Shown here one piece after another: positions 1 through 50,318 of a stretch of DNA of 64,000 nucleotides. Made by a program: the position numbers and the translations under genes. This stretch comes from Macrostomum lignano (lineage: Eukaryota): contig NIVC01000128.1 of NCBI GenBank assembly GCA_002269645.1, positions 62,001-126,000 of the forward strand. Direction: 5' to 3'. A model generated the notes under the pieces. The model was not told where the DNA came from and did not search any database. It was given only the letters and a program-made list of their open reading frames with translations. The first letter of the stretch is position 1. Each line of letters begins with the position of its first letter.

Positions 1-1077
1 ATGCCGCGACGCCGCCTGGAGTTCGCTGACCCGGATTGTCCGCCGCACAGTCACCAGCAGCATCAGCTGATGCCGCAACAGGGTGGCGACTGCAGCATCC
101 CGGAGACGGCAGCCGTTGGTGACGCTGAAATTGAAATCAACGAACGAAGCGGCGTCGGCGGCAGCGCTGGCGGCGGCAGCGGCAGCAGTCTTGCAGGAAG
201 CGTTGCAGTGCCGACTGCATGCTGGAAAACCCTGCTAGCCCTGGCATGCATGGGCGGCGGCATGCTGCTGACCGCCATCAGCCTGGCGTATGTGCACGAC
301 TACGTGCCCGAGTACCCGCCGCTGCCGGACGTCAGCCTCAGACTTGTGCCGCGCAGCGACTGGGCCCTGATGGCCTGCGAGGCCCTGCTACTATTGAACA
401 TGAGCACCGCGCTGGCCCTGTGCTTGGCCCACAGACACCGTTGGGTGCTGCTGCGCAGGACCGGCTTCATACTGGCCATTGTGTTCCTCTATCGCTCCGT
501 GACCATCGCCGTGACCGCCATGCCCGACCCGAACGCCCGACGGCACTGCGGGCCGCGCTCCAACTCCAGCCTGAACTTCGCCGAGATCTACGGCCGAGTT
601 AGCCGCATAGCCATGGGCGCCGGCTTCTCGGTTAGCAACACGCACAACATCTGCGGCGACTCCATCTTTTCGGGGCACACGGCCAGCCTCACCCTGTCCT
701 ACCTGACCATCAGGGAGTATACTCCTGCGACAGCCAGTCCGCTTCGCTGGGCGAGCCTCATCACCTGTCTGATCAGCTTCATGCTGCTGCTGTCCTCGCA
801 CGCCCACTACACGGTGGACCTGATCATCGGCTACTGGCTGGCCAGCCGCCTGTTCCTCGTGTACCACGCCTTGGCCAAGTGCCCCTCTGCGGAACGGCGG
901 AGCAGCCACCTCGCCCAGGTCTGGTGGTATCGCGCATTCGAATTCTTCGAGGCCGGCGTGCCGGGCCGGCTGCCGTGCGAGTTCCAGCTGCCCTGGCCGC
1001 ACGGCTGCTGCCAGAGAGCCTACCGGCGGCTAGGCAGCTTCCGCGAGAGGCTGCTCCGCGGCTTCACCACCCGCTGA
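1..1077 (+). CDS. Sphingomyelin synthase family phosphotransferase (PAP2-like, multi-TM), intronless
   Basis: 358-aa ORF with several hydrophobic segments and the SMS motifs CGDSIFSGHT and HYTVDL (catalytic His/His/Asp intact), plus PLPD and HCGP motifs. No SAM domain is visible. The ORF starts at base 1, so an N-terminal extension cannot be excluded. Confidence 0.9.
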   Translation: MPRRRLEFADPDCPPHSHQQHQLMPQQGGDCSIPETAAVGDAEIEINERSGVGGSAGGGSGSSLAGSVAVPTACWKTLLALACMGGGMLLTAISLAYVHDYVPEYPPLPDVSLRLVPRSDWALMACEALLLLNMSTALALCLAHRHRWVLLRRTGFILAIVFLYRSVTIAVTAMPDPNARRHCGPRSNSSLNFAEIYGRVSRIAMGAGFSVSNTHNICGDSIFSGHTASLTLSYLTIREYTPATASPLRWASLITCLISFMLLLSSHAHYTVDLIIGYWLASRLFLVYHALAKCPSAERRSSHLAQVWWYRAFEFFEAGVPGRLPCEFQLPWPHGCCQRAYRRLGSFRERLLRGFTTR

Positions 1078-2149
1078 GGGCTCCGCCCGCGTGAATTTCA
1101 GATTCATAACAGCCGGGACACTGACAGTACACTGCAAGCCTCTTTCTTCAATCAGTTTAGAATGCTGCGATGCCAAGCCAGACCAAATTAATTTAGCCGA
1201 TTAATCTAGTCTAGCTACTATAAAACTTAATTTTAGAATTTGACGTCGCAGTATTTGAAAATTGGCTGAAAATTGGAGGATAATTTGATCGATTTTTACT
1301 GCTAAAATCAACGTGGTCATGCCAGCAGGTAACTTGTTTGAAACTGTAGCTAACTTGAATAACTTGCATGAATTATATACCTAGCGATGCCAGCCATTCT
1401 GTCACTCATTCACTTCGGTCGGGAAAGCCCGATTGCCAGAGAATTTCATTCACCGTTTTTTGTTGCGTTATTTGCTCGTCACGATTAGTTCGAAAATCTC
1501 AAGTAAACGGGACATTGGATGCTTGCAAGCAGAAAATATGATGATGGACGAGATTTACAGGCGTTTTTTTCTGTGACTCAGGCTTGATTAGTTATCCAAT
1601 ACAAGTTATCGAGTTATCTGCAAGTCATCAAGTCACGTTAAGTTATCTGCACCTAAAAATCCAAGCATGAGCCATAGGAGACAAGTGGATTATCTGAATA
1701 ACGACACTCCAACGACACTGGTTCGATTCCGCACTCGCGTGGCCATTCATTTCGGGCTTGTGAACGAAAATTGGTCCAGAGAGGTTGTGCTGCGATTCGC
1801 AGCCATGAACGCCAGCCCCCAAGGCACACAGAGTGTACATGTCTGACGATTAGAAAGTCAGGGCCGCTGTACACCCGGAGTGAGCGTGTGTATGAGTGCG
1901 TGGCTGCGTACAGCATTAAACCACATGGTCCCCCAAGAGTAAGAGTTTCTTGCTAACTTCGTGGCTTATGCTTAAGTTCCTTGGCAACTCACTCTGAATG
2001 TGGCAACTTCTCTGCAGGAGATGACAATAGAAATAGGGCACTGCAGAATAAATTGCTGGCGAAATTATGAAGTTTTTCCCCGAGGTTGACTCAAAATTTT
2101 ATCAGGATATTTGGTTAAAAATGTCACCGTCAACTGTTACTTATACGAG

Positions 2150-2820
2150 CCAAGATTACTAAAGTAGGAAAGGAAACTACGTTTCTTAGAAAATATTAGT
2201 AGGCGGGTTGCTGGTTTTACCGAAAAAACATTACGGAGATAAGTTTTCATTTTTAGCACAAAAAACTGCTACGGCTCTTGATAAAAGAGAGACACAGTGC
2301 TCATCTTTCGATATGTCTTGCCTTTGTTATAGCTCTATATTGATATTCACAATTAAGGCATTTCGTTTAGAAAATTAGGATTCCATGTTGATTTTATATC
2401 CTCCGACATGTCCCATGCCTAAATAATAAAAAAACTGGCACAACTTGACTCTTTGAGTTTATTAAACTATTTGATCATTCATTCTGTTTCACATTTTGTT
2501 ACTCAGTCATTGAGCTAAGAATGATAAAAAGATTCATAACGTCAATGAGACGAGCTGTGCCATTTTTATGATTCTTTTAGGCACAATATGCATGTACGAA
2601 TGAAAGTAGGATATAAAATTAACACAGAGCACTAATTTTCTAAACGAAAAGCTTTATGAACATCCATAGAGCCATAAGAAGCTGGGCCTGCCCCCTATTC
2701 AAAGCAATAACAATTTTTGTGCTGAAAAAATTAAAACTCCATAATGTTCTTTTCGGTAAAACCTTCCTTCCTAAAAGTTTCTAAGAAATGTTGTTTCTAA
2801 ACTGCCACTTGAGTAGGTCC
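2150..2820. mobile_element. MITE-like element with imperfect long inverted arms
   Basis: ~2150-2290 is the approximate reverse complement of ~2700-2815 (shared tttcttagaaa...ggttttaccgaaaa..acatta.ggag...agcacaaaaa). A related arm occurs at ~13080-13270. Confidence 0.55.
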
Positions 2821-2860
2821 TGGATACGAGCGCATATTGAGTACGAGCGTATCCATCTAA

Positions 2861-4405
2861 CCCGATGAAAGCGGTACCCAGGCCAAGAATCGCCCCGGAG
2901 TCGTTTCAGAGGCGTTGCAGATGACAGGTCAAATAGGAAAGAAGTGATTCTAAACGACTCTAAAACGACGACATGTCACGGTACAAGCCTCCAAAAATTC
3001 GTCAAAGAGTCGCCCCAGAATAACTTTGAAGTGTTTTATTGTCTGCGACTCTGAAACGATTCTGGCGCGACTCTGGTGACTCTGGGGCGACTCTAGTGAC
3101 TCTGGGGCGACTCTAGTGACTCTGGGGCGACTCTAGTGACTCTGGGGCGACTCTAGTGACTCTGGGGCGACTCTAGTGACTCTGGGGCGACTCTAGTGAC
3201 TCTGGGCGACTCTAGTGACTCTGGGGCAACTCTAGTGACTCTGGGGCGACTCTAGTGACTCTGGGGCGACTCTAGTGACTCTGGGGCGACTCTAGTGACT
3301 CTGGGGCGACTCTAGTGACTCTGGGGCGACTCTAGTGACTCTGGGGCGACTCTAGTGACTCTGGGGCGACTCTAGTGACTCTGGGGCGACTCTAGTGACT
3401 CTGGGGCGACTCTAGTGACTCTGGGGCGACGCAAGTGACTCTGGGGCGACTCTAGTGACTCTGGGGCGACTCTAGTGACTCTGGGGCGACTATAGTGACT
3501 CTGGGGCGACTCTAGTGACTCTGGGGCGACTCTAGTGACTCTGGGGCGACTCTAGTGACTCTGGGGCGACTCTAGTGACTCTGGGGCGACTCTAGTGACT
3601 CTGGGGCGACTCTAGTGACTCTGGGGCGACTCTAGTGACTCTGGGGCGACGCAAGTGACTCTGGGGCGACTCTAGTGACTCTGGGGCGACTCTAGTGACT
3701 CTGGGGCGACTATAGTGACTCTGGCGCGACTCTAGTGACTCTGGCGCGACTCTAGTGACTCTGGCGCGACTCTAGTGACTCTGGGGCGACTATAGTGACT
3801 CTGGCGCGACTCTAGTGACTCTGGCGCGACTCTAGTGACTCTGGCGCGACTCTAGTGACTCTGGGGCGACTCTAGTGACTCTGGGGCGACTCTAGTGACT
3901 CTGGGGCGACTCTAGTGACTCTGGGGCGACTCTAGTGACTCTGGGGCGACTCTAGTGACTCTGGGGCGACTCTAGTGACTCTGGGGCGACTCTAGTGACT
4001 CTGGGACGACGGTATAACGATTCTGGGGCCGCACAGTCGTATTTGAGGCGTTCCAGAGTCGCATTAGAGTCACTGAGTTGTGTTTGAATCGCATTTGCGT
4101 CGCTTGATAAATTAGAGTCACATTTCCGGCATTTCAGCGGCGTTCTGCAGTCGCATAAAAGTCGCAGAAAAAGCGCTTTAGCGTCACTGTAGAATCGTTA
4201 GTGCGTCACTTCTGAGGCGTTCTAGGAGAATAGAAAACGCAGCTCATCGACCGTGATTTGTACCGTGACATCTCGTTTTAGAGTCGTTTAGAATCACTTC
4301 TTTCCTATTTGACCTATCATCTGCAACGCGTGTGATGTGAACCGATTCTGGGGCGACGCAAGTGACTCCGGGGCGATTCTTGGCCTGGGTACCGCTTTCA
4401 TCGGG
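2861..4405. mobile_element. Non-autonomous foldback/TIR element with an internal 20-bp minisatellite
   Basis: Termini cccgatgaaagcggtacccaggccaagaatcgccccggagtc (2861) and its reverse complement (ending 4405); inverted similarity continues ~130 bp inward. No clean TSD (ctaa / caat). Related fragments at 4480-4670 and 36820-37025. Confidence 0.8.
3075..4005. repeat. 20-bp tandem repeat (gactctggggcgactctagt), ~46 copies
   Basis: Directly visible with period 20; variants gcgcg, gcaag and tatag occur in blocks. Confidence 0.97.
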
Positions 4406-4687
4406 CAATGAACACTCAGTTTTAGCCTATAGAACCCTGATTGCACTCTAACTAATCTACTGCGTTGTAGAAAGTTAAGCGCCAGCACAATGATTCTTGG
4501 ACGACTTTTTCGCGACTCTTACGATTCTGCAACTCACGTGACACGATTGTGATGCAGAAGTCGCCTCTCCGTCGCATTTGACGCGTTTGAGTCGTTAAAA
4601 AGTCACAAGAGTCACTAGAGAGTTGTTTGCAATGACTCTAGTGATTCTTGTCACGGTATCGTTTTCAACGGGTAATTGACTTCTTAC

Positions 4688-7600
4688 CTGTCCTCCTCTT
4701 CCTCTGCGATCACAGAGTAGTCCTGCAGCGACAGTTTGGCTCGCGGCTCAAGAAAGACGTTGTGCGAATTGAAACGCCTGATTAAAATGCCTTTAGCGTG
4801 CAGGTAGCCGGCCGCCTGCGCCAGGTCACGAATGATTGACAGCTTACTGGCTGAGCCCAGCTTCTCCCTGGGGTGCAGGTGCACCCGGTCGTAGAGAGAC
4901 TGGCCCTTACGCTGGCAGGTGACCACGGCGAAACGCGACGTCGGCGGGTCCATCGACGCGCCCATGAACAGGAAGATGTTCTCGTGCCTGATGAGGCTGA
5001 GCTTGGCCACCTCCTCCCAGAACTTGCTGCGCTCCTTGCAGTCAAGATTCTCGTAGGTGTGAATCGTGACGTCACCGTGCCACTGACCCCTGCGAATGCG
5101 TGGAGTTGCGGGATTTGTCAGTTTGGATCAGGGTTGACAGCTGAAATGTCGGTCACTGCTTGAACTGAAAAAAACTAAACAGATATGAAGTTTTGAGCTC
5201 ATGAGATTTGAGCATACGATATTTGGAGCTTACACTTCTGAGTCGCTAGAGATAACTCACGCCAATTTTTGACTTAGCTAAGTAGAAAAACTTATTTCTT
5301 TAAAAATATTTTAACTAAAAATTTTTTATAAGTTTTTATAGATGTCCTCACCAAAAATCCTTAAAATGTCTAAAAATGACTATAAATTAGATTATTATTT
5401 TGTTCCTCCTCCACGTTTTTTAAACAATAAAATTCATATTGTATGGGCCAGATGTGCAACTGACAGCTCAGCCGCAGCTATCGCGCGGCGCATCTGAAGG
5501 CTGCGTACGGCTGTTCAGTCCAATGACTGGGGGGGGGGGTCACCACACACACCCTCAATTACCCCAGCTAATGCTGGCACCCATTTTACAGCTAGGTGAG
5601 CTGAAATAGTGCAGAGTTAAGCGTCTTGCTCGGTTACACAAATTGTTCCAAGTAGGTTAAGAATCGAACCCCCGACGCTCTAACCACTAGGCTACAACCC
5701 CCATCGTTAAGCTGATATGTGAAGTGTACACGTAAAAGTCAAAGTCAAGTGCCCACTCCAACCTGAACACTTTGCGCCTCCTGCCCTTGGCTAAGCAGTC
5801 TTGAAACACGATGCCGTCATAGGGAATGTTAAATTCGAACTCCTTGATTTCGAAGCTGAAAGAGAATCGAAATCGGGTTTAGGCGATTTGTACTTTTTGA
5901 AAATAAAAAAGCATCAAAACTTTGAAAAGTCGAGCAGAGAAAACGCCCACGCAGTCACATGATTCGAGAAGTTTTGTTCGGTTTCTTTCCACTCCCCCGC
6001 ACCTAGGCCTCCCAGGCCGGTCACTGCTGCTGCTGCGGGATCCAGGCAAGCCAGCAAGAGTCCGATCCAGGGATTGAAAGCGCGATAATTTGGCTCCACA
6101 GATAGGGGAGTTCCAGGGAGCCGCCAGGGCAGCGCCGGTAGGAGGTGCAAATCAGCCCAGCCAAAAGGGTGAGTGGCATGGGAGAGAGAGAGAAGGAAAT
6201 CAATCGATAAAAACTGGCTTGGACAAGAAACCGATTCCCAATTCCCCTGCCCCAAAGCAGAAAGGGCCGGTCCGGGACAAGGGAGACGCGGAGACAACAG
6301 ACAATAAAGCTCATGCACTTACAAACTCCAGAAGATTGATTCATTTTCAACAAAATATGAGACTCAATAATTGCTGACGTCTTCAGTCGAAGTGAGTCGC
6401 TAGGAAAAAGAGGCTTAGCTAATTTTATTATCCTTCTCTGTAGTCGCTGTGAGTAAATAGATTTGTTTTCTGTTGACAGCGGGACACCGGCTGAATATAG
6501 TAGGCGCACAGTTGGAGAACAATGGGACACTTAGATTCCTGTTGATCCCGGCATTATACTTTACCTTCCTCGGCTGTTTTGCACCACGCTATCAACAACT
6601 TGGAAGCAGGCAGCGCCGCCGCCCGTTGAGCAGTCCTCCTCTTCTGTAATTGTGGGGGTGGTTTTGGGGGATTTCCGATCAGGCAACAGTTGAGCTGCAG
6701 TGCACTCGTAGAGAGCTGCATGACCAATCCTGGCTGCAGGCACTCACGCTAGACTTGATCCTGAGATTGACAGGATCGGGGATCGCACCTGTCCCTGGCT
6801 CTGCTTTAATATAATAGTCTGCCCAGAATTAAAAGTTCACAACCCCTTAAAGATCTTTAGCTTTGAAGACGATTGAGAACTAGGGCCGATGACCGATGAC
6901 CGATATCAGCTTATTGATGCACTGGTAAGGTTGAAATTTTTGCCTATGGCATAATAATTAATATAATTTATTAAGTACACCTGCCCTAATAGGCAGATGT
7001 GCAACCGACAGCTCAGCCGCAGCTATTGCGCGGCGCATCTGAAGGCTGCGTACGGCTGTTCAGTCCAAGGACTGGGGAGTCGCCACTGGCCACACACACC
7101 CTCAATTACCCCAGCTAATGCTGGCACCCATTTTACAGCTGGGTGAACTGAAGCAGTGCAGAGTTAAGTGTCTTGATCCAGGACACAAATTGTTCCGAGG
7201 GTCGAGAATCGAACCCCCGACCTTACAGTCGTGAGTCCGACACTCTAATCACTAGGCTGCAACCCCCTCCTGTCTATAGCCTAAAACAAGGAAAACTTGG
7301 TAACTTTGCTATTAAGATATCCTCGGAAACAATAGGGTCCAGTAAACAAGTAAACAGGTCTTACGTGAAGAAGCACAAGCACAATATACAACTACTCCAG
7401 TGTGTACCTGCTTGCTCTCGGAGAGGGAGGTTAGGCGGAGGAAAAGGTTTCTGTTTCCCTGGGTCTTTATAATCGTAGGCTTTACCACGGATTGCGAGGC
7501 TCCAACGGTACTAAAAAGACTGCTCAAACACTCCGTTTGATGCCTATGCAAATGCTGTAGTGGAACACAAAATCCCTGTCTCTAAGCAGCACCGTTCAAT

Positions 7601-10600
7601 AATTGGGCAAAAAGCGGTGAAGGCTGAAGCCCCGGAAGGCAAAAAAAAATTCAGAGCAGTCCGTTCCATCAGTCAGTCGGACAACCAGTTGCCTGCAGCC
7701 TAGGGGTGCAAAAATTGCATCCAATGGCGACTCTCACCGCTGCTAAGCGCAGCCAGTCGCCAACCGCTTGGCGGCCAGGTGGAGCAGAGCAGCAGCTGGC
7801 CCTTCCGCTCCTGCCCGCCGCCGCTGCCTGCCTGCGACTGAAGACTCCAGCTGCGCGCGGTGGTCGCGGCGTCAAGCATCCGGCGGGCGGCCTGGCGCGG
7901 GTTCCTCCGCTGCAGCAGGTCGTAGTCGAGCTGGACGCCCCAGTTGACGAATCCGTCAACAATGGACGAGGAGGCTCCACCGTCGCGGCCGCTGTCGAAG
8001 GTGCCGAAGCCGTTGCTGCTTCCACTGGCGCAGCCGCTTCCACCGCCGATGGTGAAGGCCCCGGCAGCGTCGCCGTCCTCGGTGCGGCACGGCGTCGATG
8101 GCAGATCGGAGGCGGCGGACGAGCAGGCCGACGGGCTGGTGTAGCAGTGCAGCAGATAGTCGCTGTCAAAGCTGCTGCTCATGTTCATGACATTGTGCGC
8201 GTGCTGCAGGTCCGAGTTGCTGCACTCCTGCGGGAACTGCGGGCAGGCGATGTTCAAGTACTGCGCCTTTCCGCCCCTACCGGCCCCGCCGCAGGCGCCG
8301 TTTGCGACACCGTTGTGACCTTCAGCGGAACTGGCTGTCGTTGCAGCCGCGGCAGAGGAGGCTTTGGTCTCGCGGAGCCACTTGGTGAAGAGGCCGCGGA
8401 TGTTGGAGAAGAGGTTCGCAGCTGGTGGTGAAGCAACGTCAGAAGAGGCCGTCGCTGCCGAAGCGACCGTCACGCCGACGACCCCTGAATGAGCAGCCTC
8501 TGATCCGGCCGCTGCCGCTGCGGCCGCTGACTTGCGCATCTCGCGCCGAGCTCTCGAAGTTGACGCGATGGAGGATTTGCGGCTCTTTCGCGACCGGCAG
8601 CTGGCGGCTCCAGTGGAGGAGATCAGCGAGCAGCTGTCGCACTCGCAGTCGTCTCCGCAGTCGGCGCAGACGCCGCTGCTGCCGCCGCCGCCGCCGGCAC
8701 TGCGTCGGGAGAGACGCAGTCGGGGCTGCGGATAAAAGGGCGTCATCTCGGTGGTCTCCACCGCGTTGCTATGTACGATGTCGTACTCGGACTCATCTGT
8801 GGATGGGCGGTTTCGATGCGATCGATTTAGAATAAGATTTCGATATTTTTATATGAACTTCTTGACACGTTTTGAGCATAAAAAATGAAATTAAAGACCC
8901 GAGCTGAGCACCCATATAGTCATAAATGGTTCCAAAACATACCGAACTGAAACTCTGCCACTCTATGCTGCTGCTGTTGCTGAGGCTGCTGCTGCCGCTG
9001 CGGCTGTGGTGCCAGCGCCAGAGCCGTCAGCTGCTTGCGCTGCCCGCCAAGGGGCGGCGGCCGTCGCACGGGGCTCTCCGCCGATCGCTCCGACTGGTAC
9101 GACGAGGACGAAGGCCGGCTGACTGACGTGCCGGTGGAGTCCAGCGGCAGGCGGCTCCGCAGGCTGCCAGCCGAGGTTTCGGACGCGCTGTATGGAAAAT
9201 ATTAGCGACTGTTTATAGGGAAATCAGCAACACGCTTTTACCCCCGAAGCCAGTGGTCAGCTTTAGTCAGAGCTCAGCCACAAGTGACGCAATTTACACC
9301 GCGGTTCTGGTCTCACTCAGAGCTCAGCCACAAGTGACGCAATTTACACCGCGGTTCTGGTCTCACTCAGAGCTCAGCCACAAGTGACGCAATTTACACC
9401 GCGGTTCTGGTCTCACTCAGAGCTCAGCCACAAGTGACGCCATTTACACCGCGGTTCTGGTCTCACTCAGAGCTCAGCCACAAGTGATGCAATTTACACC
9501 GCGGTTCTGGTCTCACTCAGAGCTCAGCCACAAGTGACGCCATTTACACCGCGGTTCTGGTCTCACTCAGAGCTCAGCCACAAGTGACGCAATTTACACC
9601 GCGGTTCTGGTCTCACTCAGAGCTCAGCCACAAGTGACGCAATTTACACCGCGGTTCTGGTCTCACTCAGAGCTCAGCCACAAGTGACGCAATTTACACC
9701 GCGGTTCTGGTCTCACTCAGAGCTCAGCCACAAGTGACGCAATTTACACCGCGGTTCTGGTCTCACTCAGAGCTCAGCCACAAGTGACGCAATTTACACC
9801 GCGGTTCTGGTCTCACTCAGAGCTCAGCCACAAGTGACGCAATTTACACCGCGGTTCTGGTCTCACTCAGAGCTCAGCCACAAGTGACGCAATTTACACC
9901 GCGGTTCTGGTCTCACTCAGAGCTCAGCCACAAGTGACGCAATTTACACCGCGGTTCTGGTCTCACTCAGAGCTCAGCCACAAGTGACGCAATTTACACC
10001 GCGGTTCTGGTCTCACTCAGAGCTCAGCCACAAGTGACGCAATTTACACCGCGGTTCTGGTCTCACTCAGAGCTCAGCCACAAGTGACGCAAGTTACACC
10101 GCGGTTCTGGTCTCAACTGTGTGGGTGATGCAAGTTGCGGCACCAGGCTGCTAGTGTAGGCTGGTGAGGTGAGAGTGGAGCGTTTTCAAGGCGACAGCGG
10201 ACCCTCTAATCGGAAGGCATGTACACTGTCAGCGCTCTTGGGGGCATCAATAGCCTGAGAAACCTTTTTTTGAACTCTGCCAATAGTCATATTTCATCCC
10301 ATTCCAATTTCTCTGCAATTGTTCAGTTTCTCAGTTTTCCTGAGAAAGAAGAAACTTGCAACAATTTGTCTCGCAGCCAGACAAAGTCGTCCCCCAGTAG
10401 CAGATAAGAAAAGCCTGTGCGAAGAACCACATTGGAGGCGAATTAAACTGCACAAAAATCCAACCCTAAATCTGAGCCTGGCAGTAACCGTCTACTGATA
10501 TTGACTACTGTAAGATTTATGACAATTGTGAAACTCAAAGCAAAGAAACAGGAGGTTTTAGAGCGACAAAATTTGAGTGATTTATTTCTATGCCTTTCAA

Positions 10601-11357
10601 GGTTAGCTATCTATTTTATTTTTTTTTCATGTTGACTCGATTAGCAATCTATTATATTCCTTCATCTATGCATTGGATAGATTAGCAATCCATTCTATTA
10701 TTTCATCTATGCATTGGATAGATTAGCAATCCATTCTATTATTTCATCTATGCATTGAATAGATTAGCAATCCATTCTATTCCTTCATCTATGCATTGAA
10801 TAGATTAGCAATCCATTCTATTCCTTCATCTATGCATTGAATAGATTAGCAATCCATTATATTCCTTCATCTATGCATTGAATAGATCAGCAATCCATTC
10901 TATTCCTTTATCTATGCATTGAATAGATTAGCAATCCATTCTATTCCTTTATCTATGCATTGGATAGATTAGCAATCCATTATATTCCTTTATCTATGCA
11001 TTGGATAGATTAGCAATCCATTATATTCCTTCATCTATGCATTGAATAGATTAGCAATCCATTCTATTCCTTCATCTATGCATTGAATAGATTAGCAATC
11101 CATTCTATTCCTTCATCTATGCATTGGATAGATTAGCAATCCATTCTATTCCTTCATCTATGCATTGTCTAGATTAAGCAGTCCTCTCCTTCTTCATCCG
11201 ATATAGGAGTTGCCCCAAACTCAGCAGCCAAGTCGATAGGCAGGCTCGCATTTTCACTCACTTGTCCCTGAAGATGTTGTCGTCCATGCCAGCGCAGCAG
11301 TGCCTGTTGCGCTGCGTGAAGCCGCCGGCTTGCTGAGAAATCATGCTGCAGTTTCTT
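4688..11357 (-). CDS. KSR/RAF-family pseudokinase (KSR3-like), partial. Exons 11262-11357, 10067-10147, 8943-9187, 7738-8796, 6565-6733, 5763-5855, 4688-5089; possible micro-exon 1993-2011
   Basis: Spliced translation EFNIPYDGIVFQDCLAKGRRRKVFR|GQWHGDVTIH...EEVAKLSLIRHENIFLFMGA...YLHAKGILIRRFNSHNVFLE...LQDYS matches the RAF/KSR kinase N-lobe (W-H-G-[DE]-V, RHENxxLFMG, YLHAKGI). All GT-AG junctions are phase-compatible. The two most upstream exons are less certain. Confidence 0.82.
5445..5702 (-). mobile_element. tRNA-derived SINE, copy 1 (head partly deleted)
   Basis: Highly similar to 6980-7266 and to the reverse complement of 49906-50190; B-box GGTTCGATTC present on the minus strand. Confidence 0.8.
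6980..7266 (-). mobile_element. tRNA-derived SINE, copy 2
   Basis: Minus strand begins ggggttgcagcctagtgattagagtgtcggactcacgactgtaaggtcgggggttcgattc (tRNA-like A/B boxes), followed by core cttcagttcacccagctgtaaaatgggtgccagc and an AT-rich tail. Confidence 0.85.
9268..10114. repeat. 50-bp tandem repeat, ~17 near-identical copies
   Basis: Unit agagctcagccacaagtgacgcaatttacaccgcggttctggtctcactc, period 50. Confidence 0.97.
10637..11172. repeat. 41-bp tandem repeat, ~13 copies
   Basis: Unit gattagcaatccattctattccttcatctatgcattgaata, period 41; intronic in the kinase model. Confidence 0.95.
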
Positions 11358-14300
11358 CTGTTAGAGGCAGTACAGGCCAAAACTGCACAATAGTGAACTA
11401 AAACTTAATAATTCCGATTACTAAACTTAGTTAAGCGACGGATGCGCTGAGCGCAGCGGTCTGCCAATAGACATTGGCTCGGGGAAGAGAACTTGTCTTC
11501 TGCTGCAGTCGTCTCGGCTTCGCCCCAACTTTCTGTCTTACATATATATCTGCCCTTCCCGGCGCATTGGATTTATAGGCGCCCAACAAGAAGCAGAAAT
11601 GAGAACAACCACTGTTCCGTCATTGGCTAAGCGCTGGAAGCAGCAAGCCGACCTCGAAGTGTAACCCCCCTCTGTATGCGCATTGTACGCATATTTCGCT
11701 CTCAAGCGGAGCGATTAGGAATTAAAAGGGCGAGGGGTTGCTCTCGGACAGGAAGAACAGCTGAGGAACTGTTTTATGAGGCTTGCCCTGGATTTTCGGG
11801 TTTTTTGACTCGCACGCAAGCTAAAGCGAAACGCTACCACCGCATACTGCAGTGCCCATACATTCTCTGCAGACCCATGGGAGGCAATTGTTATGCATGC
11901 ATGTACAGCTGATCCCTGCACCTTCTCCAATAGTTGATCCCAAACCTGTCAAAGCAGCATGTCCGGGAGTCGGGCGATTTTCTCTTCAATCCCAATAAAA
12001 GTGCAACAATTCCCTCATGCGCTCCTATATGTATAGGGAAGAATAAGATTGCAGCGCATATGCATGTACAGCATTGGGATCTGCAGTTGTATGCGAGCCT
12101 CTGTGACTGCATCTGTGACTGTACTTATAATAATCAATTTTAGCAGTATATCATTCGATTTACAACTCTCTCATTTTCAATCAGTCTTTCTTTTGCGAGC
12201 AGTTTTTGCAGCTCAGGCCGCCCCAACGCGTGCACCTAACCTGTGTATAAAAGTGATGGGCCAATATCTGATACATTTACATATACGCACGTGATAACGT
12301 TAGTTCCACAGAGTATTATTGTATCCTATAGCACGTGTGTCTACTGAAATAAAGTGCATTCAAGGCGAGAAAAATGCAACATAGGCTTTGTGTACTTCAT
12401 TACTTGACAATAACGCAATTTACCGGGATATCATTTTAGAAAACGAACGAGTCTATGAGCGTAAAATAAAATAGTCTATGGTTGTAAGTGGGGGCTTCGC
12501 CTCCACACCCCCATTCCCCCTTCCCACTCGGATCCTGATGGACAAATTGACCAATGAAGTTAGCTGGAAGTGAGAAAACATGGTAATGGCCAAATTACCA
12601 TGAATTCTCACTTCCAGACAACCCCCATTGCCATTTTCAAGCAATGACCGGTCATTGCTTGAATGCCATTGTCTTAACGTAAATTACCATAGACATTTTG
12701 AACAATGTCGCTCAAAGTGCGCCAGGGTGCACAGCCCATTGCCTCTGATTATAAAAAATAATTTATTGACTTCAATTTAAGAAACTTTCCATTCTGGCCA
12801 TGTAATTTCCCGCTCGCCCGGGGCGCATAAATGGCAATGTTACGGTTCACGCTGAACCCGTTCAAGACCCTTACCATAAATTGTTGCCAGAAGTGTGCTC
12901 GTACACAAATGATCGAAGCATACGACAGTAGTCGCGAAGAAGACATCGCGAAATATGCTCAGTACTGTCACAGCTCTCCTGGTCACAGCGACAATCAAGT
13001 CGTACTTTTAGTTGCTAACCTTTCGACAGGGTTCTCGCCCCTGGCAATGTACGTAGAATAAGAAATTAACATAGAATCCTTAAGAAAGACAAAACATATC
13101 AAAATATGAACATTGGGTCTGCCTCTTACGTCGTCGCTTCGTATCAAAAGCAATAACAATTTTTGTGCCAAAAATGAAAACTTACGATCTCCGTAGACGG
13201 TCTTCGTTTTTTCCGGAAAAACCTGCTTCTTAAAATTTTCCAAGAAACGAGGTTTCCCGTCCTACTACTTGTGTAGTCCTTGAGTAAATAATTCATATTG
13301 TTTTGTCTTGTTGTTTTGTAATTCTTGTTTATATGTTTGTTTTTTGTTTTTGTTGTTGTTTTATTTCTTGCAAGTACAATATACGCTGATCTTAAGCAGC
13401 TTAGGCATTTGTTGCTCTCGCGCCCAGTTATTGTTGACATGCAGTGACGCACAATGTCCTGTGTGACGGCTGGAATAATCCGAAATCTGCCGAATCAAAA
13501 GCTCTTGCACAGAGCCCTATCTGTAATACGTGTGTCCGCAGGTGCTGCTCTATATTCTTTCTATCCTGTTACTCTCCCTTTATTAAATGCTAGACTATTA
13601 TAGTACTTGTTACATGACCGACGAGCTGCACCTGCTGGCACTGACAACAGATACTAGAATAACAAGACGGGCCACTCAGCACATTTGCGTGTAAACTACT
13701 TCCAGTTCAGTAGTAAGTTAAACAGAAGCATTTTGATTTATTTTCAAAGCCAAGGCTCTTAACTATATTGGCTCTTAACCCCCAGCTTGAACCCTCCAAC
13801 CGCGCCTTTCCACACTACCCCCCTCCCCCGCCCCGCCCCAATTTTTATTGCCTTTCTCGGAATTCCAGCCTAAAGCTGCCATCTACTTTTCAGTGGACTG
13901 GCTAATGTACATTATTGCCAATTATTGCCATTGGCAATTTACATTTGCCAGAAGAAATGGGCGGCAAAAATTTGACAGTAGAAATGACTGATTTTGCTTA
14001 GTGCAGCCTGCGGCTAGGTGCCTGGGCTTCTGTTGCCACCGGCTCCTTCAGTAGTTCCTTATCATTAGCCTCCCGATCTGGGCCGCATGAGTTACACTGA
14101 CTTGCGTTTTTATCAGGGCTCTCGGTATTCTTATCGTTATCGATTGTGACTTTGTTTCGTGTGACATTGCACAGTGTGACTCCAAAGCCTGCAGGTCTGA
14201 CTCGCGATACCTTGACTGTCCTTGGTGTTCGTCCTGATGTCGCTGGAGTCACCACGTTGCCTTGCTAGGAGGTGATTGCGCCAAGTGCGAAATGTACTAT

Positions 14301-14651
14301 ATTAGCATACAGTTGGCACAATGTACGCAGTTTCCGACGGAGCTAAGAGATAATCAGGGGCCGTCCATTAGTCACGGGGGGTCGCATCGGTAATTGACTT
14401 TTAAAAGGCTTAGACTTTTATGGCACTTCATCGTTTTTATCTAAAGCTCAATTTTGATTGGTCGCAAGGTACAGAGATAACATTGATTGCAGCAGTTTCA
14501 TGAACTGCAGACGTAAACGAAAGGCATGCAAGCAAGCGAAAGACTACAAGAAACAGGTTCGTGCATACGAGCTATGAGCTACAGTGAACACTTGCATACC
14601 GAAGCCATGTTACCGTAAACATTTTTCTGCAAAGTGGAGCTCATCATCAAA

Positions 14652-15939
14652 ATGCCTCGGTTGCTGAATAGACGCACTGCAGCTCAGTGGATTTTAGGGT
14701 ATTTCCTGTTAGCAACGTTCTGTACAATATCTGCGAAGCTATATTTTGATTACTTGAGCGCACAGGCGAAAAAGTCACGGGAATCGGTTAGCGATAATGA
14801 ATGTCCCACAATGCACCAAGGCTTCAGCAGGAAAAACACGGAGAACACCACTCAGCCAGCTGAGCTGCCGCAGCTGCCTTCCTCTGAGTTCTACATTCGA
14901 ATGCTGGGCGCTAGGTCGCCGCCTCGAGGAGACCTGTTCGATCCGCAGATCAATGCGACTGAACTGCGAGCAACTGTCAAGCTGCTGTGGGCGTTTTTGG
15001 ACCTGTGCAAACAGCACAACATCCAGGTGATGCTGTATGGAGGTACACTTCTAGGCTCGTACCGGCATCACGGCGTCATTCCATGGGATGACGATGTAGA
15101 CATGCTGATGAGGGAGGCCGACAAGCGCAGACTTATTGAAGCACTGAAAGGGTGAGTCTGCATCGACATTGCGAGCAACTATTAGCGTTCCCGCCACATT
15201 AGACTGTTGGTAGTCAAGTCGTCTCACCTTTTCGCCACAAGTCGAGGCAAATAGCCATGACTCTGGCTCCAGTTTTTCCTTAAGACGTCTCAAAAATGAA
15301 TTTCTCTCTGAGGCGTCCCAAAAATGAATTTGTGCAAAACTTAATTAATTACTCGTATTTTTCATGTGCTTTATTTTTACTTACAAAAGACAAAAAATCA
15401 ACATCAACAGGCACCCGGACCTTCGCCTAAGGCAAGCTGGTCGATGGAAAGTGTCCAGCAAGTCACATTGTCTTAACGTGGCCAGGCACGGCTGCTGGCC
15501 CTTCATTGACCTGTCATTCTACGAGCTGAAGGACGGCTGGGTTGTTGACTTGCTCGGCTCTTTTGGGAAGAAGTACCGCTACCCAGAGACTGTGACCTTC
15601 CCGCTGCATAAGAGGCCGTTCATGGGCCGCTGGATCGACTCGCCCAGAGATGCGCTCAAATTTCTATCCTACTCGATTAAGCTTTCGAGCGCATGCATCA
15701 GCCTGCACTATTCCCACAAGTTTGAGCGCTATCCAAAGGTTGAGTCGGTGTCAATCGACTGCAAGGAACTCGCTCTGACCTACCCGTTTGTGTGTCGCGT
15801 CCCGGACTCTGCTACCTCTCATGGTGGCGTCTTGGAGACGCTGACATTTTCTGACGGCGGACCGGTGTACACTGTGCCAGTTAATGAGCCAAAGGGTGTG
15901 ATTAATGCTATTTACAGCACTCTGTCGGTGAAGAATTGA
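14652..15939 (+). CDS. LicD/fukutin-family nucleotidyltransferase-fold protein, type II membrane. Exons 14652-15151, 15411-15939
   Basis: Motif [23 protein letters not shown]-terminal signal anchor ([16 protein letters not shown]) and FIDLSFY. The phase-2 intron GG|gtgagt...caacag|G joins the two ORFs. Confidence 0.88.

Positions 15940-37721: not shown

Positions 37722-50318
<12,597 letters not shown>

Follow-up and report, generated by a model that had tools for sequence, protein, structure and literature searches.

Does the flatworm Macrostomum lignano encode a kinase-dead relative of RAF that could drive RAF/ERK signalling without RAS? The question arises from a stretch of 64,000 nucleotides of its genome (the window; contig NIVC01000128.1, positions 62,001 to 126,000, with coordinates below counted from its first letter), in which a sequence-only reading had recognised a RAF/KSR-type kinase with degenerate catalytic motifs at 4688-5855 and proposed that it belongs to KSR3. 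This family was defined in 2023 by Chessel et al. (PMC10322840) as a group of kinase-dead proteins of non-chordate metazoa that are reported to activate RAF/ERK without RAS. We found that the interval, on the minus strand, corresponds to the exact outer boundaries of exons 5 and 6 of a 10-exon KSR3-type gene. That the gene is a KSR3 orthologue, as the sequence-only reading had proposed, is supported by its place in the phylogeny, by its scores against family profiles and by signature residues, as well as by motifs conserved at both termini; we give this assignment a probability of about 0.9. That the constitutive RAF-activating mechanism described for other KSR3s also operates in M. lignano appears likely at about 0.6-0.65.

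A ten-exon gene with a degenerate kinase domain

We built the gene model by threading PAA82595.1 (794 amino acids, BOX15_Mlig007280g2) onto the locus. This full-length paralogue lies on a second contig and falls into the same 90% cluster as the local entry, PAA90038.1. The resulting product has 794 amino acids, and all introns are of the GT-AG type. Six exons lie inside the window (11344-4688, minus strand). The remaining four, exons 7-10, lie 399-2215 bp past the window's left end and encode the activation segment, the kinase C-lobe and the HSSSEP tail; we read them from contig NIVC01000128.1 (locus L001, which matches window 14965-1 at 100% identity over its bases 1-14965). The GenBank entry at this locus, a 'hypothetical protein' of 233 amino acids (PAA90038.1, BOX15_Mlig000150g1), starts at an internal methionine of exon 6 and is truncated relative to the 794-amino-acid gene; PAA82595.1 is likewise labelled 'hypothetical protein'. 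Within the window, the gene is laid out as follows:

Exon 1: 11262..11344, minus strand; ATG at 11344; MISQQAGGFTQRNRHCCAGMDDNIFRD; 100% tblastn match to paralogue P0002; GT donor
Exon 2: 8943..9187, minus strand; Ser/Pro/Gln-rich N-terminal region; GT-AG sites
Exon 3: 7738..8796, minus strand; 353 amino acids, mainly low-complexity Ala/Ser/Gly; three KSR3-conserved N-terminal motifs
Motifs in exon 3, minus strand, from the alignment with KSR3 N-termini: NLFSNIRGLFTKWL at 8375-8416; RSWSLQ at 7838-7855; STWP at 7772-7783
Exon 4: 6565..6643, minus strand; acidic EEEDC stretch; linker to the kinase domain
Exon 5: 5763..5855, minus strand; acidic segment before the kinase domain (NtA), EIKEFEF, at 5831-5851; degenerate P-loop AKGRRR at 5774-5791
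Exon 6: 4688..5089, minus strand; VTIH at 5059-5070; αC FWEEV at 5008-5022; SLIRHEN at 4978-4998; IRRFNSHN at 4759-4782; DYS at 4714-4722
Intron 6, window part: 1..4687, minus strand; 5086 bp in total; nested PAP2_C gene; 20-bp satellite

On the minus strand, exon 5 (5855-5763) translates as (S)FEIKEFEFNIPYDGIVFQDCLAKGRRRKVFR and exon 6 (5089-4688) as GQWHGDVTIHTYENLDCKERSKFWEEVAKLSLIRHENIFLFMGAS...GYLHAKGILIRRFNSHNVFLEPRAKLSLQDYSVIAEEEEDR, joined at canonical GT/AG sites. Every motif named in the sequence-only reading (AKGRRR, VTIH, IRRFNSHN, DYS, LIRHEN and the acidic EIKEFEF) is found in this translation. The N-terminal region comprises 488 amino acids and is largely of low complexity, with short KSR3 motifs kept. 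Upstream of the start codon, at distances of about 280 and 230 bp, the minus strand carries a CCAAT box (11626-11622) and a TATAAAT element (11577-11571); these are consensus-level matches only, and their placement would fit a gene that begins with exon 1.

The 166 amino acids encoded inside the window match the Pfam family PK_Tyr_Ser-Thr at 2e-12 and, among solved structures, Drosophila KSR (8bw9_D) at 1.3e-23, human KSR2 at 8e-22, KSR1 at 1.9e-21 and BRAF/CRAF at ~1e-18. That the kinase-like exons stand far above chance is confirmed at the level of sequence comparison. An AlphaFold2 model (46-sequence alignment) reached a mean pLDDT of 89.1 and a pTM of 0.86; among PDB structures it resembles BRAF kinase domains most closely, with TM scores of 0.72-0.89.

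Upon alignment with BRAF, each catalytic element proved altered. The P-loop reads AKGRRR (G464A, S465K, G466G, S467R, F468R, G469R), the β3 lysine is a histidine (K483H, in VTIH), the catalytic loop is IRRFNSHN (H574I, R575R, D576R, K578N, N581N) and DFG has become DYS (D594D, F595Y, G596S), the aspartate of which is also retained in 30/38 members of the KSR3 clade described below. Because the β3 Lys (now His), the catalytic Asp (now Arg) and the Gly-loop (now filled with Arg) are all replaced, the protein, judged by its residues, cannot carry out phosphotransfer. By contrast, R509/H510 of the BRAF dimer interface are retained as R554/H555, so that the RAF dimerization arginine is indeed kept in the LIRHEN motif. 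Since every RAF and KSR sequence has this arginine, it does not discriminate between families. At the 'donor' positions specific to KSR3 (L/W at BRAF K499, Ser at R506, Ile at T508 and a K-V type pair in β7-β8), the protein has W544, S551 and I553, and its β7-β8 pair R636-A637 is a conservative variant of K-V.

Assignment to the KSR3 family

When the 306-amino-acid kinase region was compared exhaustively by HMMER with 1.84 billion representative proteins, 125 of them reached E <= 1e-30. The 166 amino acids encoded inside the window, submitted to a word-indexed protein search, matched only the locus's own cluster. Multi-kinase-domain proteins aside, the top HMMER matches are 530-680 amino acids long, carry a C-terminal pseudokinase, and align at 36-43% identity with E values of 1e-69 to 1e-47. 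They share WHG.V.I[H/Y/Q/N], degenerate P-loops and K-R-H-S-x-S-E-P tails. KSR1/2-type proteins (~900 amino acids, with G.GRFG, VA[IV]K, HKD and an ending ...SAESVF) begin at ~1e-43, and RAF-type sequences, as judged from the motif listing, do not occur among the best 150 matches. Two of the matches are named KSR3 in PMC10322840, namely Lottia XP_009044189.1 (P0007) and Lingula XP_013397833.1 (P0027). For Saccoglossus, that paper gives only the mRNA accession XM_006825955.1; XP_006826018.1 (P0014) is presumably its product.

A neighbour-joining tree of 91 sequences, in which human BRAF and CRAF served as outgroup to 88 matches and the M. lignano protein, placed that protein with a KSR3 clade of 38 sequences, the group being monophyletic in 200/200 bootstraps, and KSR1/2 in a separate clade. 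The Lottia and Lingula accessions and the Saccoglossus protein all fall in the KSR3 clade. The echinoderm matches from Diadema and Acanthaster (P0026, P0024) belong to the KSR3 group, and a Ptychodera 'KSR2-like' protein of 896 amino acids (P0049) to the other. Scored against profiles built from these two clades, the M. lignano protein reached 337.9 bits for KSR3 and 230.6 for KSR1/2. The residues at individual sites, tabulated for the KSR3 clade (n=38) and the KSR1/2 clade (n=50), read as follows:

BRAF K483: here H; KSR3 H 28/38; KSR1/2 K/R 50/50
BRAF K499: here W; KSR3 W 15, L 15 of 38; KSR1/2 K/R 49/50
BRAF R506: here S; KSR3 S 18/38; KSR1/2 R/K 47/50
BRAF T508: here I; KSR3 I 33/38; KSR1/2 T 47/50
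BRAF D576: here R; KSR3 R/K 21/38; KSR1/2 D 48/50
BRAF K578: here N; KSR3 N 19/38; KSR1/2 K/R 46/50
BRAF F595: here Y; KSR3 Y 18/38; KSR1/2 F 47/50

In this alignment, nearly all clade-discriminating sites of the protein are in the KSR3 state.

The published hallmarks of KSR3 are a remodelled ATP site, a shortened β3-αC, L/W at K499 and an S-K-I-R interface, together with an N-terminal C1 domain (CRD) and the absence of CC-SAM and a proline-rich region (PMC10322840). KSR3s also have an atypical 14-3-3 site of their own, HxxSxP, where RAF and KSR1 have RxxSxP. Between the β3 Lys position and the dimer Arg, M. lignano has a span of 24 residues, which is also the mode of the KSR3 clade (22/38); it is mostly 26-27 in KSR1/2 and 26 in BRAF. 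The shortening thus amounts to 2 residues relative to BRAF in our alignment, the figure of Chessel et al. being 3. There is one extra β7-β8 residue relative to the KSR1/2 clade. NtA contributes E494 and E496, and the position of BRAF D449 is E/D in 38/38 KSR3-clade members; the Trp that follows NtA is replaced by Phe, as it is in 11/38. At the C-terminus, WHSSSEPENLH (residues 774-784; exon 10, outside the window) forms an HxxSxP 14-3-3-type site. Further upstream, three short motifs align with the N-termini of KSR3s (NLFSNIRGLFTKWL, T/R-S-x-S, and STWP with an acidic run after it), the Pro of the TWP motif being invariant in a 34-sequence alignment.

Pfam detected only the kinase domain in the 794-amino-acid model. 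CC-SAM and the proline-rich domain were not found, which holds if exon 1 is the true 5' end. Neither an RBD nor a C1 was found by this search, and the catalytic residues are replaced, in disagreement with a RAF. Nor does the protein display the GxGxxG, β3 K/R, HKD, DFG, CC-SAM plus CRD, or RxxSxP tail that characterise KSR1/KSR2.

One member of the KSR3 clade comes from a nematode: KRX59163.1 of Trichinella sp. T9 (P0041), labelled 'Kinase suppressor of Ras 2', has VMIN at β3 and a C1. Chessel et al., going by C. elegans, describe KSR3 as lost from nematodes (PMC10322840); from its placement in our tree, KSR3 may survive in basal nematodes.

Predicted role, departures from the prototype, and alternatives

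Functional data on KSR3 come from echinoderm, hemichordate and cnidarian proteins only (PMC10322840). If M. lignano KSR3 acts as the sea-urchin, hemichordate and cnidarian proteins do, it would serve as a constitutive allosteric activator protomer, binding the RAF kinase domain side to side through R554/H555, flanked by the KSR3-type neighbours S551 and I553. The acidic pre-kinase segment and the short β3-αC, predicted to hold αC 'in', would favour the activator role, and 14-3-3 on the C-terminal HSSSEP site would stabilise binding. ERK signalling would then be set by transcription of the KSR3 gene rather than by RAS-GTP. RAF binding, ERK activation and RAS independence are what we infer for this protein by analogy with those systems, and the ligand-independent ERK signalling that the sequence-only reading suggested likewise extrapolates from them.

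Several observations weigh against this reading. The first concerns the C1 domain. The sequence-only reading had correctly noted its absence (and that of an RBD) from the recovered exons, and had counted this as fitting KSR3, with a C1 in upstream exons as grounds for refutation. That rule was mistaken, since the KSR3 prototype carries a CRD. Its lack of a C1 sets the M. lignano protein apart from the prototype and does not confirm the assignment; in the sea urchin, KSR3 activity falls strongly upon mutation of the CRD cysteines (PMC10322840). Besides the Pfam result, a six-frame pattern search of the window gave no full or core C1 pattern, with one partial match on the plus strand at 8196-8264, inside exon 3. 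A hidden Markov model (HMM) of C1 built from 16 KSR3 proteins, which scored KSR1 positive controls at 33-40 bits, found nothing above 8.6 bits when run over all six reading frames of both the window and the paralogous locus. As a candidate for a missed C1 exon, the best match of this HMM ('GLSCKNCSQK'; 8 bits over 10 residues, located ~850 bp before the start codon of each copy) was judged to be chance. Exon 3 does contain a cysteine cluster (~8308-8346; residues 151-163, CADCGDDCECDSC), and C1-less mollusc KSR3s have CECG, CNCRH and CRGC at a comparable place; the cluster might be what is left of the CRD's zinc site, or a substitute for it.

Two substitutions and a motif change add to these departures. 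At the position of BRAF L485 we found Tyr532, where most KSR3s are reported to have an Arg that is needed in the sea urchin (PMC10322840). The αG aromatic, BRAF F667, is replaced by Glu721 (encoded in exon 8; L001 15925-16054, outside the window), whereas W/Y/F occupies this position in 82/88 KSR3 and KSR1/2 homologues. According to one paper, F667 sits in the hydrophobic BRAF-MEK1 interface; because Glu721 replaces this aromatic, MEK docking may be altered. APE has become PPE. Our tree, moreover, is distance-based, and its BRAF/CRAF outgroup sequences were entered by hand. Finally, a literature search for Macrostomum and KSR found no functional, expression-pattern or interaction data.

The absence of C1, E721, Y532 in place of the activity-relevant Arg, and the 488-amino-acid N-terminus, which is ~200 amino acids longer than in other KSR3s owing to large Ala/Ser/Gly-rich insertions, could alternatively mark a KSR3 derivative with a shifted function: a decoy or inhibitor that binds RAF, or a scaffold that serves other partners through its long disordered N-terminus. 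This is the main alternative, and we consider it unlikely. Mollusc KSR3s, including that of Lottia, likewise lack C1 and have F/Y at L485, so both features are traits of the spiralian KSR3 lineage rather than a one-off decay. Across the KSR3 clade, a Pfam-detectable C1 occurs in just 14/33 proteins and is missing from the Lottia KSR3 of PMC10322840 and from the mollusc proteins; the residue at L485 is F in 16, Y in 9 and R in 8, which makes the Tyr a sub-lineage trait. The interface, NtA, the short β3-αC and the 14-3-3 site are all kept. As for E721, another paper states that 16 solubilising BRAF mutations, F667E among them, do not involve MEK1 interactions. The idea that BRAF F667E abolishes MEK binding was not confirmed.

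A more daring version of the activator reading, which strikes us as quite improbable, takes these departures at face value. A CRD-less KSR3 with an acidic residue at the MEK-contact position of αG might represent a minimal pseudokinase, able to activate RAF without C1 membrane recruitment and without MEK docking. Such a form, perhaps spiralian-wide and here kept in duplicate under purifying selection, might let transcription drive ERK activity independently of RAS in this highly regenerative flatworm, in neoblasts or wounds for instance.

Far less probable is that the gene is a fast-evolving orthologue of KSR1/2, the canonical scaffold that depends on RAS, and that long-branch attraction among degenerate pseudokinases alone has drawn it to KSR3. 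The nearest solved structures by sequence are indeed KSRs (Drosophila KSR, KSR2 and KSR1), and neighbour joining is a simple method. However, the grouping recurred in every bootstrap replicate, the KSR3 profile is ahead by 107 bits, and the shared states are specific residues rather than mere losses (β3 H, K499 W, S-x-I-R-H, R at the catalytic Asp, K578 N). The one-residue β7-β8 insertion and the HxxSxP tail are also specific derived states. Furthermore, the protein lacks CC-SAM as well as the GxGxxG/HKD/DFG that sequences of the KSR1 clade retain, and its N-terminal motifs are of the KSR3 type.

The KSR3 gene has a near-identical syntenic duplicate on NIVC01000461.1, with the same LicD-family gene upstream and a nested PAP2_C gene. 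Both coding sequences measure 2385 nt and differ at 21 codons, of which 15 are synonymous and 6 non-synonymous. All 6 non-synonymous differences fall in the low-complexity N-terminal region; the 4 differences in the kinase domain are all synonymous. The ratio of non-synonymous to synonymous divergence (dN/dS) between the copies is 0.12, with dS 0.027 (Nei-Gojobori; binomial p = 5e-6 versus neutrality). The introns diverge by ~1-8% plus indels, and their lengths differ (intron 1, 2074 versus 2812 bp; intron 6, 5086 versus 3209 bp). The assembly's GenBank gene models come from an RNA-seq-guided transcriptome (StringTie/TACO plus de novo assembly, with open reading frames called by TransDecoder; PMC5730564), so the models are transcript-based, although reads could not be assigned to one or the other of the two near-identical copies.

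Thus, although the locus exists in at least two near-identical copies and its GenBank model is cut to 233 amino acids, it is highly improbable that the gene is a pseudogene, left to decay after the recent genome duplication of M. lignano, with dead motifs that reflect relaxed constraint: the frame is open through all 10 exons with canonical splice sites, the models derive from transcripts, the dN/dS indicates purifying selection on both copies since duplication, and the 'dead' residues are ancient, because KSR3s of other phyla carry the same ones.

Surroundings of the gene and comparison with known systems

Within intron 6 of the KSR3 gene lies a PAP2_C (sphingomyelin-synthase-like) gene at 1-1077 (plus strand; Pfam 1.1e-20), which runs off the left end of the window; the nesting is found at the paralogous locus as well. 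Upstream of the KSR3 gene, in divergent orientation, a LicD-family gene occupies 14634-15155 (plus strand) and onward. This neighbour is also present at the paralogous locus (L002), and the duplication therefore spans several genes. Repeats and other features of the window are:

3061-4010: intronic tandem array (intron 6), 20 bp x 47.5 copies, 97% matches
9267-10115: intronic tandem array, 50 bp x 17, 99% matches
10632-11184: intronic tandem array, 41 bp x 13.5, 95% matches
5449-5676 (intron 5) and 6994-7221 (intron 3): ~230-bp interspersed repeat, copies 88% identical; again at ~49906-50217, 43 kb off
44617-45522 (plus strand) and 46524-47864 (minus strand): pair of open reading frames; HTH_32, DDE_3 and Sleeping-Beauty HTH domains in one, a gelsolin repeat in the adjoining one

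By its domain matches, the reading frame with HTH_32, DDE_3 and Sleeping-Beauty HTH is classed as a Tc1/mariner-type transposase remnant. ARAGORN found no tRNA in the window.

M. lignano KSR3 adds a member to a published family in which a flatworm protein, Schmidtea mediterranea SMEST026170001.1, had already been reported (PMC10322840). It leaves the picture of the family unchanged and is therefore a useful annotation rather than a surprise, and it corrects a database record from a 233-amino-acid 'hypothetical protein' to a gene of 794 amino acids. Since M. lignano is amenable to transgenesis and RNA interference, the gene offers a way to study RAS-independent ERK activation in a spiralian that regenerates from stem cells, and its natural CRD loss and αG Glu are ready variants with which to ask which parts of KSR3 are needed to activate RAF.

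Like Paracentrotus lividus KSR3, the M. lignano protein is a pseudokinase of the RAF/KSR fold in which P-loop, β3 Lys, catalytic loop and DFG are degenerate. A serine stands three residues before the dimer Arg in both (S361/R364 in the sea urchin, S551/R554 here). It shares with this and other KSR3s the L/W at K499, the short β3-αC, NtA, HxxSxP, and the lack of CC-SAM and proline-rich domains. The flatworm protein differs from the sea-urchin one in having no C1/CRD, in the Tyr at the L485 position, the αG Glu, PPE and the longer low-complexity N-terminus, as well as in its β3 residue, which is His (the commonest KSR3 state) rather than Gln, and in keeping the DFG Asp.

The best full-length matches are mollusc KSR3s (Lottia XP_009044189.1 and homologues from Haliotis, Babylonia and Mizuhopecten), with 40-43% identity in the kinase domain. 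These proteins share with M. lignano the lack of a Pfam C1, an F in place of the pre-kinase Trp, VT[IV]H, F/Y at L485 and the FW of αC, in addition to the N-terminal F..I...F..W, T.S.P and TWP motifs and an HS.SEP tail. In contrast to M. lignano, they measure 590-670 amino acids and keep the αG Trp and APE; the flatworm protein has its long Ala/Ser/Gly insertions. The tail WHSSSEPENLH compares with KRHSSSVPGNLH in Schmidtea KSR3, a comparison of the tail only, and with KRHSSSEPERLH in Limulus KSR3.

With KSR1 and KSR2, M. lignano KSR3 has in common the superfamily, the fold, the GYLHAKGI and RHEN motifs and the dimer Arg. KSR1/2 differ from it by their GxGxxG, β3 K/R, HKD and DFG, a longer β3-αC, CC-SAM plus CRD, and a tail with RxxSxP that ends in ...SAESVF. 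Kinase-impaired oncogenic BRAF mutants (G464/G469/D594 classes) carry substitutions at the same positions (here G464A, F468R and G469R). These mutants retain RBD and CRD, and their kinase-dead class is RAS-dependent. KSR3s have been argued to mimic such mutants, which activate wild-type RAF through dimerisation (PMC10322840).

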